A stretch of 64,000 bases of DNA, taken from the NCBI RefSeq assembly GCF_006345805.1, contig NC_043014.1:53196001-53260000 (forward strand), given 5' to 3'. This stretch comes from Octopus sinensis (Eukaryota). Made by a program: the position numbers and the translations under genes. A model generated the notes under the pieces. The model made no database searches. It was given only the letters and a program-made list of their open reading frames with translations, and was not told the DNA's origin. Shown here in pieces: positions 2,530 through 13,930 of the stretch. The first letter of the stretch is position 1, and each line of letters begins with the position of its first letter.

Positions 2530-3122
2530 TTATGCGCTTCCAGATGAGACGCATGTTTTTGATGCCATGTCAAAAACTTTGTTGGGAGGACAGAACTGCA
2601 CCCATGGATTAGCGTTGTCATCGCAGTGGATGTATCGATGAGAATTATGCGGATAAGGATAATAAACTATTCCTTTGGCAATTTCCTTGGGACGGCATGG
2701 GTTTAGTAAAGAGCTTGGTGTCGTCTTTACGTTGGAGACACAGCGCGAAGCAGATGTCATCCATTCTGTTTTTGGTGGACAAGGTACGACCCAGGCACGG
2801 CCCCACACATCACACTCAACGAAGAAAAGCTTGTTGGCAGGATAAGGGAAGAACCAAAGGTTTTGCCTGATGTTGTCGTAAGTGCAAAGATTGGAATGTT
2901 TTGGCGACATGATTTTCTTCGGGTTGGTAACATGGTCGAAACCGCAGTTCTGCCTGATTGGATGGTAGTGAAGGCCAGGTGGACAGGTAATTACGTAAAC
3001 TCTTCCCTTTAAGTCACACTTGAGATATTTGGTGTTGTCATGGGGGTAAGGAAATACCAGTTCCTTGTTTCTTAGCTTGTCTGGGGTACAAGGGTTGCTG
3101 CTTCCAACTATGACGTCTGTCG
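2530..3122 (-). CDS. Last coding exon of the secreted lysozyme-like/VWA/chitin-binding-repeat protein: three 4-Cys repeats
   Basis: Acceptor ctaatttcag|CG (phase 1), open to TAA at 2530. Repeats NPCTPDK..FPYPHDNTKYLKCD..GRVYVITCP..C / NLCTYDN..FPYPANKLFFVECDVWGRAWVVPCP..C / NPCRPKE..YPYPHNSHRYIHCDDNANPWVQFCP..C resemble invertebrate chitin-binding (peritrophin-A/CBM14-like) modules. Confidence 0.88.
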
Positions 3123-3509
3123 CTGAAATTAGACAAATTTTAAAGCATGAGAAGTCATTTGTGGAATTATGGACGAGTTTCGCGACATTCCCTCACTTGT
3201 CCACGACCATCACCACAGAAGCTAAACCAGTAACGTCTGCCTAGAATCGCCCACTTTTGATTATCAGCTTTGTCTCTACCCATGACTCTCTCGTACATCA
3301 TTTCCTTTGTTCAAAAATATTCCTTTGTATCTCCCACTCGCCGTTTCCATCCCAAACATCCCGCCATTTCCTAAGCAAAATTAGACAAACGTTAATAACA
3401 GACGACTATCAACTGTTCAATGCGCCATAAATTCATTAAATGGGGACATATTTTTTGAAAAAGTCCGAAGCCCACAGAGAGATAGTGGCCGCCCACATAT
3501 TATCAGCCT

Positions 3510-3779
3510 TGCTTTAGTGAGAGTTGCTGAAGCATGGAACAAACTGCCGGCATCAGTTGTTAGTTGTCGGAGCACTGCATCCTTCAAAACTTCCATGCTT
3601 CCTGAGATTCGCCAACACTACACCTGATTTTCTCCCCTTCATACACACACAAGCATGTATCTGACTCATGCATTGTTCGCTTTCCAGACATTTCTACATT
3701 ACTGCATGTACTTTATATGCACTTTCTGACAAGTTGTGGTGCACCTGAGCACTGTATACAATAATTTCATTATTATTAT
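3510..3779 (+). mobile_element. 3' end of a CR1/L2-type LINE (5'-truncated)
   Basis: Reads RVAEAWNKLPASVVSCRSTASFKTSM, the RVVxxWNxLPxxVV C-terminal motif of CR1/L2 ORF2, followed by a 3' UTR and short (ATT)n tail. Confidence 0.7.
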
Positions 3780-4243
3780 AGACCTCAGTCAGATCCGTTT
3801 TAGAGACATTATGTTAAAACAAGCACTTGGGTAACTTGAAGACTGCAGCAGCCCTGCCTGTCGTTTCTGCTTTTCACGATCTACAATGTCGTATCACATT
3901 ATCTAACATAACCGTTTCTTTTATTTTCTTAAAGCCGATATACTTTGAGGCAGATTTGGCTATCATTTTGCTATAAGCTAGACGCTCCTCCGGAGGCTCG
4001 TCTTGGTTTAAAAAATTCATTACTTACGTGGACAGAGTTTATCTGACCATTTGCTCGTAATTATATCCACAACGGTACAGTTTCGAATCACGCCGTTTTC
4101 AATGCAGACGACTTCGGCAACTGCAAAGAAAAGAGTGATAAAATAATAATAATAATAATAAGAATAAGAATAACAATAACAACAATAATAACAATAACAA
4201 TAATAACAATAACAATAACAATAATAACAACAATAATAACAAC

Positions 4244-4296
<53 letters not shown>

Positions 4297-4299
4297 CAA

Positions 4300-4478
4300 C
4301 ATCGAAAAATACCTTAGGGATGAAAACCCTGGTTCGAAATTTCCCGAAGACACCTGATGAAAGCTGGAGGTATATCAGCCGAAATGTTGTGTTAACAACA
4401 AACAAGATGAGGACAAATATCCATCAAATATAAATAATGTAAATAATGTAAATAATTCCTCATCTCTTAAATATAGAA
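4300..4478 (+). repeat. Short dispersed repeat carrying a hammerhead ribozyme motif (probable Penelope-derived terminal repeat)
   Basis: Homologous to the inverted copy at 21026-21140. Follows an (AAT)n/(AAC)n tract. Contains the core CTGATGA...GAAA. Confidence 0.75.
4349..4393 (+). ncRNA. Minimal type-I hammerhead ribozyme motif
   Basis: Stem I GACAC(4349-53)/GTGTT(4389-93); core CTGATGA(4354-60); stem II (A)GCTG/CAGC(C); GAAA(4381-84); loopless stem III AT/GT; cleavage triplet GUU. Confidence 0.7.
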
Positions 4479-4558
4479 TTGTATTATCTTTTTTGTCTTT
4501 TGAAAAAAAAGTTGAGTCATTTGTATTCGTCAAAATAAAGCCTGGAAAATTCGTTTAC

Positions 4559-4802
4559 CTTTCGGTTCTCCTTTATGGAACTTCACATGGAAATTGCTTT
4601 CGTTGAAACAAAATTGTTGGGAGGTGTTCACTTTGCTCGCTTCGAACGTCAGGTAGAGGGGTCGACCGTTTTTGTCGGCCTTTACGAAAAGCACCATGGG
4701 CCGGCCATCAGCAGCAGTTCCTGTAATCTCGAACACTGATTCGCTTGGGTTCGAATCGTTATACGATCCGAAAATTCTGACCACTGAACAATTAGTTTCA
4801 AC
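4559..4802 (-). CDS. Internal exon (linker domain) of the lysozyme-like/VWA gene; acceptor at 4802 or 4783
   Basis: Open frame (VETNCS)VVRIFGSYNDSNPSESVFEITG...KGEPK, donor G|GTAAAC at 4559 (phase 1, matches the last exon). Two frame-compatible acceptors: AAG|4802 (phase 0, after exon 5124-4979) or CAG|4783 (phase 1, directly after exon 8843-8637). Confidence 0.75.
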
Positions 4803-4978
4803 CTTGTTTCAAAAAGGATTAAATATAGCAAAAGAAAAAAAAAGGTAACAAAAAGTAACAAAAAGCAAATAAAGAAAATAATTTGATCGAATGGTTTAAG
4901 AAGTTTACCCCGTTACCGTCTGCTTGTCTGATGCCAACAGATAAGAATTACAATGGGGCTCCTAGCGATGTTATTTAC

Positions 4979-5124
4979 CTTTGGAAGCGTAACTTTCGAA
5001 TGAATCGGGGACAAGCATAATAATAATAGAGACCAGGAATTGCCAACAGATTTGATTAAAAAAAAAACCCGCATGTATTTTTTACGGTCAAGAGTTGCCT
5101 CAACCCACATTTCTGTTATAATTC
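4979..5124 (-). CDS. Candidate additional internal exon of the lysozyme-like/VWA gene
   Basis: tctccttttcag|GA acceptor (phase 1) and AAG|GTAAAT donor (phase 0). Open frame GIITEMWVEATLDRKKYMRVFFLIK...SKVTLPK joins in frame to the 4802 acceptor. No recognisable motif, so uncertain. Confidence 0.35.
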
Positions 5125-12582: not shown

Positions 12583-12868
12583 TGACTGACACTCGATTCG
12601 CTGCTTCTTTGAACTTGTTGTTGTTATTGGTGACCCCTGGATGGAAGTAATGTTGCCAGATGCTTTCTTGGCTGGCCGCATCCCCGGCAATGGGTTTGCC
12701 GCGCAGTTGCAGGTACAGGTAAGTCGCTAAACCGGAATACAAAGGTTTCATCAGATCCGACCATTTGGTCTGTGACCAGTTGATGTTGAATGTTTGCTGA
12801 ATCTTTTGGCACGGTGCAGCCAACACGCCGCTGCAACGTCTTACGGCATTGTACTGCTTTTCGGTGAT
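12583..12868 (-). CDS. Exon 2: second half of the lysozyme/transglycosylase-like N-terminal domain
   Basis: (CTT)n polypyrimidine tract + ctag|ATC acceptor (phase 0), A|GTAAGT donor (phase 1). ITEKQYNAVRRC...IQQTFNINWSQTKWSDLMKPLYSGLATYLYL...QESIWQHYFHPG. Confidence 0.88.
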
Positions 12869-12919
12869 CTAGAGAAGAAGAAAGAAGAAAAGAAGAATAT
12901 GATGATAATTATGATAATA

Positions 12920-12935
12920 ATAATAATAATAATAA

Positions 12936-12966
<31 letters not shown>

Positions 12967-13057
12967 AAGAAGAAGAAGAAGAAGAAGAAAAAGAAGAAGA
13001 AGAAGAAGAAAAAGAAGAGAAAGAAGAAGAAGGAAAAGAAGAAGAAGAAGAAGAAGA

Positions 13058-13089
<32 letters not shown>

Positions 13090-13190
13090 GGAGGTGGAGG
13101 AGGAAGAAAGGAAGAGAAAGAAGAGAAAGGAGGAAAAGAAGAGAAAGAAAATAAAGAAAATAAAGAAGATAAAGAAGAAGCTGAAGAAGA
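12920..13190. repeat. (AAT)n-(AGA)n compound microsatellite abutting the exon-2 acceptor
   Basis: Direct reading. On the minus strand it supplies a long (CTT)n pyrimidine tract. Confidence 0.9.
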
Positions 13191-13532
13191 AACACGTGAA
13201 ATGCAAACTAAAACTAGAACATCAACGTAAGGTGAGAGAGCGATGGCAAGAAAAGCCCCGAAACCGGGCAAATATTGGGTTATGGGAAATAAAAAAGAAA
13301 AAGGGAAAGCAAAATGGCAGAGAGAGAAGCGTGTGTTTGTGTGTGTATGTGTGTGTGTGTGTGGTGAGGTAAGGGAGAAATTGTTTGAGTGGACAATCTA
13401 AGCGCCATCTTGTCTTCCGTTGGTCATTTGCGATTTGGACAAAGCACGGTTGTTGGTCTTGCCACCTTCTCAGCGTCTATAAAAGGGCCACGTCTTTTCT
13501 TATAGATGATAATAGTGATAGTGGAAAGTGTA

Positions 13533-13570
<38 letters not shown>

Positions 13571-13684
13571 GGACAGACAGACAGAGAGAGGAGGGAGTGA
13601 GAGAGAAAGGGAGAAATGAGGGAAAGATGATGAGGTTCGGCAATTAAACTACCAACAAATAAACTAACAAACAAACAAACCAAC

Positions 13685-13930
13685 CTGCCATATTCCTCCG
13701 AAGAAATTCGGTCGGAAAGTGCTGTGGTCGAAACCATCTTTCGATTCTACGTAGGCCATTCTTCTGACGAAAAGTCTGTCATTATCAAATATACAGGAAC
13801 CTCGAATTTTATCGACGACAGCTTCAACCACGCTGGGACCGTTCGCTTTTGGCACCAAAGTCCTGTCGACACTGTTCGCCTTCACAACATTCAACAATAA
13901 AGCACTGGCAATCCACCATATTGCTTGCAT
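13685..13930 (-). CDS. Exon 1: signal peptide plus first half of the lysozyme/transglycosylase-like domain
   Basis: ATG at 13930; MQAIWWIASALLLNVVKA is a hydrophobic signal peptide; ...FVRRMAYVESKDGFDHSTFRPNFFGGIWQ; CAG|GTTGGT donor; 246 nt, phase 0. Confidence 0.88.

Follow-up and report, generated by a model that had tools for sequence, protein, structure and literature searches.

Animals are known to possess lysozymes of the c, g and i types as well as phage-type lysozymes. The animal g-type enzymes belong to GH23, like the SLT domains (PF01464) of Escherichia coli. A bacterial origin has been proposed for animal GH23 lysozymes (2026; PMC12855814), and a 2024 survey reported g-type lysozymes to be absent from Octopus bimaculoides, O. 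vulgaris, O. sinensis and Amphioctopus (PMC11576321). Another described system that comes close to the present one is the group of molluscan matrix proteins of the Pif/BMSP type, which are secreted and carry VWA followed by CBM14-type repeats. In bivalve BMSPs the VWA domains are at the N-terminus, and a single-VWA member of the BMSP subfamily has been reported in O. bimaculoides (PMC11291548). Neither lysozyme nor transglycosylase is mentioned in that paper on molluscan VWA/chitin-binding proteins (PMC11291548). Here, we describe a gene of O. sinensis whose product resembles Pif/BMSP in these traits and differs from it by a lysozyme-like domain ahead of the VWA. The gene lies in a stretch of 64,000 nucleotides (contig NC_043014.1, positions 53,196,001 to 53,260,000), hereafter the window, in which positions are counted from the first letter.

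A single minus-strand gene (window 2533-13930) with eight coding exons encodes a protein of 722 amino acids. In order, this protein shows a signal peptide, an N-terminal domain of 160 amino acids (hereafter the N-domain), a VWA domain, a Cys-containing middle region and three CBM14-type repeats. A first-pass annotation of this DNA, made from the letters alone, had described frame-consistent exons for a signal peptide, an N-terminal domain, a VWA and three repeats, and all of these were borne out in the 722-residue model. Our main finding concerns the N-domain, which is very likely a lysozyme-superfamily homologue and, all lines considered, best placed on a divergent branch within the SLT/GH23 group of lysozyme-like domains. 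What is new is an unannotated family within a well-known superfamily, a new architecture and an unusual distribution over animals and phages. We did not file the N-domain in PF01464 because the curated Pfam model is not matched.

The N-domain family in animals, phages and bacteria

The N-domain (residues 19-178) gave no match in Pfam at E<=10 and none among PDB sequences. A word-indexed search returned 13 relatives, in which AYVES(K/R)DG and GGIWQ are invariant, and an exhaustive profile search returned 1,847 cluster representatives at E<=1e-3, 364 at E<=1e-30. Named members come from gastropods (Haliotis, Littorina), bivalves (Tegillarca, Mya, Potamilus), an annelid (Owenia), mites (Medioppia, Halotydeus), echinoderms (Acanthaster, Amphiura) and sponges (Ephydatia, Halichondria). 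Many members are multidomain, some with two or three copies of the domain, and many are stand-alone proteins of about 200 amino acids. Among 60 long members, VWA was present in 46 and CBM_14 in 16, N-domain plus VWA being the commonest architecture of the family; an SLT or lysozyme model was matched by none of the 60. Public names of members are 'uncharacterized', 'VWFA domain-containing' and 'chitin-binding type-2 domain-containing', and also 'cartilage matrix protein-like', 'integrin alpha-1-like', 'collagen alpha-6(VI)-like' and 'collagen alpha-5(VI)-like', the last two being the kind of mislabelling that the first-pass annotation had predicted. A collagen VI identity was rejected for the octopus protein, which has no Gly-X-Y region: its 722 residues hold no run of at least four G-x-x repeats.

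Conservation was counted over 187 metazoan copies of the domain, in octopus numbering. The Glu of the YVES motif, E62, was kept in 175 copies and replaced by Gln in 6, and the residue after it was Ser or Thr (S/T63) in 184. Around this motif, G31 was found in 182 copies, R57 in 174, A59 in 180 and G66 in 184. The residues G78, G79, I80 and W81 were each kept in 173-185 copies (G79 in 185, W81 in 183), and in the second half of the domain the same held for P124 (185/187), S127 (175/187), Q149 (186/187) and W153 (181/187).

A survey of animals versus phages and bacteria, which had been suggested from the outset, showed not only the many invertebrates listed above but also, unforeseen at that stage, that the closest relatives are a phage protein family. 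Twelve of 14 metazoan members matched phrog_3108, a small family of phages and prophages that PHROGs lists under 'unknown function', with a best E of 3.3e-17; the octopus sequence alone had no match to phrog_3108 at E<=1. A tblastn search with the family consensus retrieved 24 phage records, which include Klebsiella phage phiKO2 (Gp54), Pseudomonas phage PSA28 (QVJ13210), Salmonella phage PMBT28 (AUZ95556) and several Vibrio and Shewanella phages; in two oyster-associated phage records the homologue is labelled 'endolysin'. A profile search added about 90 proteins of 150-170 amino acids, encoded on phage-sized contigs or in the genomes of bacteria (Aeromonas, Endozoicomonas, Bermanella, Cycloclasticus); every one of them is named 'hypothetical' and lacks a Pfam domain. 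When aligned with hhalign, the metazoan and the phage/bacterial alignments matched over 137 columns with a probability of 99.0% and an E of 2.3e-18, pairwise identity between the octopus sequence and the phage family being 8-19%. On the strength of these profiles, the metazoan family and phrog_3108 are true homologues. Common to both are E-(S/T)-x-x-G, G-x-x-Q, an IP...A-x-YWKKYxNT..GKGT tail and a length of about 160 amino acids, whereas the phage proteins are cytoplasmic and single-domain, without signal peptide, VWA or CBM14. In the joint metazoan and phage/bacterial alignment (111 sequences, phage-dominated), Glu62 was the only invariant column (110/110 homologues), and G79 and Q82 were each kept in 109 of 110. 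Poor conservation of this Glu had been named beforehand as one of three refuting results, alongside a different fold and a lack of splicing between exons 1-2 and the VWA exons; all three were looked into, and none refuted the idea. A recent phage insertion or contamination was rejected as the source of the octopus domain, which is intron-split and conserved across phyla.

Gene context gave an indication of what the phage proteins do. In PSA28 and PMBT28, the homologue lies directly upstream of a holin with three transmembrane segments (phrog_785, E 1.1e-25) and an Rz-like spanin (phrog_89, E 1.7e-8), and no other endolysin is annotated among the 68 genes of PMBT28. In phiKO2, gp54 has a putative late promoter upstream and is flanked by genes for two membrane proteins, gp53 and gp55. 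This context makes it probable that the family supplies the endolysin in some phages at least. In the literature searched for phrog_3108, for endolysins of phiKO2 or PMBT28 and for proteins joining lysozyme-like and VWA domains, we found no description of the family and no experiment on an endolysin role of its phage members, which is an absence of evidence only.

Other phage copies were found in different surroundings. In Vibrio phage 1.049.O (locus L007, 2453-2821) and Shewanella phage 1/44 (locus L009, 2222-2590), the homologue follows a baseplate gene and a 70-residue open reading frame (ORF); in the Vibrio phage the gene after it is tagged PF07087, a context unlike the holin-spanin cassette of PSA28 and PMBT28. 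A 636-kb uncultured phage record, LR756504.1 (locus L010, 5803-6456; 441858-442247 of the record), has three matching places and holds a copy 46% identical to the animal consensus, far closer to it than the other phage copies. Genes for ribonucleotide reductase and type II topoisomerase lie near this copy, which might point to the direction or the path by which the domain passed between phages and animals.

Resemblance to SLT/GH23 enzymes and a working model

The N-domain profiles were aligned by hhalign with the SLT domains of E. coli K-12 Slt70, EmtA, MltC, MltD and MltF, taken from the genome record. The metazoan family scored 27.2 (P 9e-4), an alignment of metazoan and six phage sequences (A3) 30.2 (P 3e-4), and a phage-rich alignment (A5) 36.9 (P 2e-5, probability 77%). 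With the same query, the reversed template scored 8.5, and 100 column shuffles gave a mean of 11.9 (standard deviation 2.3) and a maximum of 18.0. The global mode of hhalign produced a spurious end-to-start alignment, which was discarded. The lysozyme-like/SLT motif order noticed in the first-pass annotation was thereby supported for motifs I and II and tentatively for the later ones (P 3e-4 to 2e-5, with controls far lower), and the three stretches on which it relied, RRMAYVESKDG, GGIWQI and QESIWQHYF, are all present.

The alignments placed four motifs of the N-domain on those of the SLT domains. In motif I, RRMAYVES fell on AIARQES, so that E62 aligned with the Glu of 'QES' in Slt70 and the Glu-Ser pair with E-S in EmtA, MltC, MltD and MltF. 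In motif II, expected about 20 residues beyond the Glu, GGIWQI (GGIWQ being residues 78-82) fell on SGLMQI, and MltD itself reads GIWQI. In motif III, DLMKPLYSGLATYLYL fell on LLDPETNINIGTSYL and KPLYSGLAxxLYL on DPxxNIxxGxxYL; the octopus residues differ (KPLYSGLATYLYL). In motif IV, IWQHYFHPG fell on FSSAAYNAG and YWxxYN on AAYNxG, again with differing residues. The alignment of A5 with SLT spans only motifs I and II. The likeness to the E. coli SLT domains lies in the order of the motifs, with a Glu-Ser closing a helix, next G-(L/I)-(M/W)-Q and, more tentatively, a helix with D/K-P...Y-L before an aromatic-Y-N segment. In contrast, the octopus domain stays under every Pfam threshold, reaches a template-modelling (TM) score of only about 0.45, and belongs to a eukaryotic, secreted protein that is encoded with introns and fused to VWA and CBM14.

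Structure prediction pointed the same way. AlphaFold2 gave a mean local confidence (pLDDT) of 87.7 with 14 sequences and of 92.5 with 111 sequences, the latter with a predicted TM score (pTM) of 0.89. Eight helices make up the all-alpha model, in which the Glu lies at the C-terminal end of the helix 34-45 (domain numbering). The Foldseek list against PDB was made up almost entirely of lysozyme-superfamily enzymes, mostly GH23, with weak scores. It included the GH23 chitinase of Ralstonia sp. A-471 (TM 0.39-0.51, Foldseek probability up to 0.75), the lytic transglycosylase gp144 of phage phiKZ (TM 0.51, probability 0.84), Slt70 (TM 0.45, probability 0.54), and also MltF, goose-type lysozymes, hen lysozyme and GH73 glucosaminidases. 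The Ralstonia chitinase (3w6b-3w6f) and gp144 (3bkh) were the best solved-structure matches with both models (TM 0.45-0.51), but at an E of 0.39 or worse and with 11-18% identity. The fold check by AlphaFold and Foldseek, which had been proposed beforehand, did not refute a lysozyme-like fold and favoured it weakly (TM about 0.5). Among viral models (BFVD), the top match was A0A6J5QT34, an uncharacterised protein of 1,021 amino acids from an uncultured Caudovirales phage (TM 0.79, E 5.8e-4, 23% identity). Here the matching domain is one portion of a very large phage protein, so that in some phages it may belong to a lysin carried on the virion and not act as a free endolysin. Next among the matches came a putative endolysin (TM 0.52) and many SLT, LT_GEWL and tail-lysozyme proteins, the TM of named endolysin and SLT proteins being 0.34-0.52.

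Two known groups were considered as a home for the family. Animal g-type (GH23) lysozymes belong to the same superfamily and show an E-S ... G-x-x-Q-V-D pattern, and the family consensus GGIWQVDE presumably resembles the GLMQVD of goose lysozyme. Membership in the g-type group was rejected on a Foldseek TM of 0.16-0.24 to 153l, 3mgw, 3gxk, 3wyh and 4g9s. This low TM, together with the reported absence of g-type lysozymes in octopus, indicates that the N-domain family is a separate lineage from the g-type. The 'unusual endolysin' fold of the Enc34 type (PMC8943055) gained no support: no structure labelled as Enc34 endolysin appeared in the PDB sequence searches or the Foldseek lists.

The data show the gene structure, the order of the domains, the homology with the phage family, the likeness in sequence to SLT domains and the invariance of the Glu. 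What we infer about the octopus protein, namely its catalysis, its substrate, its anchoring to chitin and the tissue in which it acts, takes the form of a working model that we consider likely: an enzyme that cuts glycans and is retained in a matrix containing chitin. The first-pass annotation had proposed a matrix-anchored glycan-remodelling or antibacterial protein, which is supported in homology, in architecture and, weakly, in fold. Placed where its helix ends, Glu62 would serve as general acid on a beta-1,4 glycan of N-acetylglucosamine and N-acetylmuramic acid (GlcNAc/MurNAc), and the GGIWQ loop would line the glycan cleft with the conserved aromatics W81, W113, Y126 and W153. The CBM14 repeats would anchor the protein to chitin, and the VWA would tie it to other matrix proteins. 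The first candidate substrate would be the peptidoglycan of bacteria touching the matrix, and the second chitin. Peptidoglycan appears somewhat likelier than chitin, since murein is what the phage relatives have to attack. The best solved-structure match points the other way, since it is a GH23 chitinase; it shows that this fold can act on chitin, consistent with the CBM14 repeats of the octopus protein.

Several observations weigh against this model. The N-domain, the family profiles and three phage homologues found nothing meaningful in Pfam (including SLT PF01464), NCBIfam and PDB sequences, the sole matches being a designed protein, MccF and similar at E>0.003. In Pfam, the three phage homologues, like the N-domain itself, had no match at E<=10. 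Foldseek found nothing in PDB at E<=1e-3, TM being at most 0.51 and E at least 0.39, and no beta-hairpin follows the Glu in the predicted structure. In three Zobellviridae-like contigs, the neighbours of the homologue are soluble and uninformative, with no membrane proteins adjoining, so that the endolysin role is supported for only some members of the phage family. Lastly, cephalopods including octopus carry R132Y, A150E, Y152I, K154Q and N158H relative to near-invariant residues of the wider family, and have Thr where 120 of the 187 metazoan domains have Asp after GGIWQV. Read from the sequences, these substitutions could mean altered or lost activity.

The cephalopod changes lend themselves to another interpretation, that the N-domain is lysozyme-derived but serves as a non-catalytic glycan-binding (lectin-like) or protein-interaction module, the whole being a structural, Pif/BMSP-like organiser of the chitin matrix. 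As a matter of fact, the five substituted positions are at least 95% conserved in the phage-dominated alignment, VWA with CBM14 is the architecture of matrix organisers, and the similarity to active enzyme structures is only moderate. However, pseudo-enzymes usually lose the catalytic residue first, and here the putative catalytic Glu is the one that never varies in the joint alignment (110/110), with the neighbouring Ser/Thr, GGIW and Q149/W153 all kept in octopus; moreover, where 75% or more of the metazoan members agree, which is the case at 38 positions, octopus has the common residue at 32. We regard such a non-catalytic role as unlikely and lean towards an N-domain that is catalytically active in octopus.

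A more radical alternative was that the resemblance to SLT and lysozymes is coincidental, an unrelated helical domain having acquired 'ES' and 'G-x-x-Q' by chance. The lack of a significant match in Pfam, NCBIfam, PDB sequences and Foldseek-PDB would fit with this, as would hhalign probabilities of only 23-77%. Against it stand the four motifs in the same order and register, with scores of 30-37 compared with a shuffle maximum of 18 and 8.5 for the reversed template, and the dominance of the lysozyme superfamily, mainly GH23, in Foldseek lists from two libraries and two models. In addition, phage homologues occur in lysis cassettes, and the single invariant residue is the one aligned with the catalytic Glu. 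Coincidence is thus quite improbable.

A wider reading of the glycan-cleaving model can be put forward tentatively. The family would form an unrecognised class of animal lysozyme-like enzymes, distinct from the c-, g-, i- and phage-type classes, sharing ancestry with a phage endolysin family and maintained in lineages as far apart as sponges, echinoderms and molluscs. Usually fastened to extracellular or chitinous matrices by a VWA, in many cases with CBM14 as well, it would act as an immobilised bacteriolytic or chitin-remodelling barrier, filling in part the role of the g-type in cephalopods. If the N-domain is active, a further widespread animal family of wall- or chitin-cutting enzymes has been missed by lysozyme surveys, and invertebrate VWA and chitin-binding 'matrix' proteins are possibly scaffold-bound enzymes and not pure scaffolds. 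The same reading, if true, would give a function to the 'unknown' phrog_3108 and explain PMBT28-like phages without an annotated endolysin. It would also bring a possible further case into the debates on where animal lysozymes came from and on genes shared with bacteria and phages. A curated domain model built from these alignments could re-annotate well over a thousand protein clusters.

Gene structure and domain architecture

We obtained a first model by linking stop-free stretches of the three minus-strand frames at canonical splice sites with consistent phases, which gave 717 amino acids. Intron 5 had been given a GT donor and an acceptor further downstream there; alignment with orthologues led us to replace this model. 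Intron 5 is an apparent GC-AG pair, with its donor at window 5809/5808 (GTG/gcaagtat ... aacaag/GTT). Exon 5 was ended at this GC donor because orthologues read GNGTTIVVETNCSVV / TIVVETNCS (VVETNC) across the junction. A GT-only exon finder takes a wrong junction at intron 5 and loses the conserved VETNC segment. The lengths of 637 and 692 amino acids given by the first-pass annotation were thus superseded by 722, and its 'optional exon' did not hold, as exons 5-7 are all present in orthologues and O. bimaculoides shows a single gap over residues 83-722. The coordinates are collected in Table 1.

Table 1. Exons and motifs of the octopus gene, and further features of the window
Feature	Window position	Strand	Residues	Content
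Exon 1	13685..13930	-	1-82	ATG 13930-13928; signal peptide, residues 1-18; first half of N-domain; GGIWQ; GT donor after CAG
RRMAYVESKDG	13765-13733	-	56-66	exon 1
Glu codon	13747-13745	-	62	exon 1; E62-S63 motif
GGIWQI	exon 1/2 junction	-	78-83	
Exon 2	12583..12868	-	83-177	second half of N-domain; KPLYSGLATYLYL; Cys94/Cys102 pair; AG acceptor, GTAAGT donor
QESIWQHYF	12670-12644	-	149-157	exon 2
Exon 3	11584..11940	-	178-296	first part of VWA
DESGS	11905-11891	-		exon 3; metal ion-dependent adhesion site (MIDAS) motif
Exon 4	8637..8843	-	297-365	second part of VWA; tblastn 100% identity
Exon 5	5809..5954	-	366-414	Ser/Thr/Asn-rich start of middle region; GC donor GTG/gcaagt
Exon 6	4559..4802	-	415-495	conserved middle region (VETNCSVVRIFGSYNDSNP...)
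Exon 7	4028..4120	-	496-526	Cys-rich segment (CIENGVIRNCTVVD...C), kept in molluscan orthologues
Exon 8	2533..3122	-	527-722	and TAA stop; CBM14 (peritrophin-A) type repeats
Repeats 1, 2, 3	~3111-2944, 2904-2737, 2718-2548	-		exon 8
Microsatellites	6000-8520, 12100-12560, 12880-13140			introns; (TA)n, (CA)n/(CATA)n, (GAA)n
GIY-YIG ORF	18006-18716	+		236 amino acids
Long ORF	26683-29052	+		789 amino acids, uninterrupted
Transposase fragment	31349-31906	-		mariner/Mos1-type

Orthologues were found along the whole length of the protein. The O. bimaculoides gene LOC106878459 (P0175) is 90% identical over residues 83-722, the Argonauta hians orthologue 69% identical, and P0177, a protein of 705 amino acids from transcript-like contigs, 51% identical. 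The 721-residue orthologue of Haliotis asinina is 37% identical over residues 18-719 and collinear from the signal peptide to the last repeat. Judged by these identities, the gene is real beyond chance. P0177 is a single ORF on two independent Logan contigs (2.3 and 2.8 kb) that runs from N-domain through VWA to the repeats, and we take these contigs to be cDNA-like because the gene extends over 11 kb in octopus. An ORF for the N-domain followed by one for VWA was likewise seen on each of two long metagenome contigs of eukaryotic appearance.

On present evidence, then, exons 1-2 belong to the same protein as the VWA exons, as the first-pass annotation had assumed. That they form instead a separate gene for a small secreted protein, with the VWA-CBM14 protein starting downstream, would accord with the different first exon and unrelated 26-residue start of LOC106878459 and with the many stand-alone family members, but it is very improbable, as LOC106878459 keeps exon 2 and so has a truncated domain and not a separate gene, the Argonauta model and the two transcript-like contigs read through GGIWQ/ITE into VWA and CBM14, the Haliotis gene model is collinear and the splice phases fit.

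The RefSeq model of LOC106878459 (666 amino acids) begins with those 26 unrelated residues and joins at exon 2, and it therefore lacks the exon with the signal peptide, Glu-Ser and GGIWQ. To our reading, this N-terminus looks like an annotation error, and it helps to explain why the N-domain went unnoticed. In Argonauta hians, too, the gene model is cut short at its N-terminus, beginning with MAFVESKDG. Across the family members compared here, gene models often drop or mislabel the N-domain.

The remaining domains were assigned more readily. The N-terminus, MQAIWWIASALLLNVVKA, is signal-peptide-like. Pfam found VWA at residues 184-355 (E 4.7e-44), with the DxSxS of the metal site present as DESGS; the Thr and the Asp presumed to complete this site are invariant columns across five aligned orthologues. 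CBM_14 was found in the full protein at E 1.1e-15, and scans of single repeats gave 5e-9, 0.089 and 2.2e-7 for repeats 1, 2 and 3. Repeat 2 is below the Pfam threshold, yet it has the same four-Cys spacing as the other two. The Pif/BMSP-type pairing of VWA with chitin-binding repeats proposed in the first-pass annotation was in this way confirmed. On reading the 722-residue sequence, no acidic mineral-binding part was noted.

Between VWA and the repeats there is indeed a region that had been called a 'linker', but it is not a mere linker. Encoded by exons 5-7 (residues 366-526), it comprises about 160 amino acids, contains Cys and shows conservation reaching as far as Haliotis, where Cys, Asn and Pro positions are unchanged. 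No Pfam family was matched, the best being DUF7805 at E 0.02, and the region may be another undescribed domain.

Other features of the window

The 64-kb window holds no second copy of the N-domain, VWA or repeats and no tRNA genes. The introns of the gene are full of long microsatellites, and the GC content goes down to 22% in window 6001-8000. On the plus strand, the ORF of 236 amino acids encodes a GIY-YIG nuclease domain (Pfam E 4.4e-6) and was probably left behind by a mobile element, Penelope-like or of another kind. The transposase fragment on the minus strand has an HTH_48 match (E 4e-21) and a partial DDE domain. The ORF of 789 amino acids has no Pfam match and is unusually long for an intron-rich genome.

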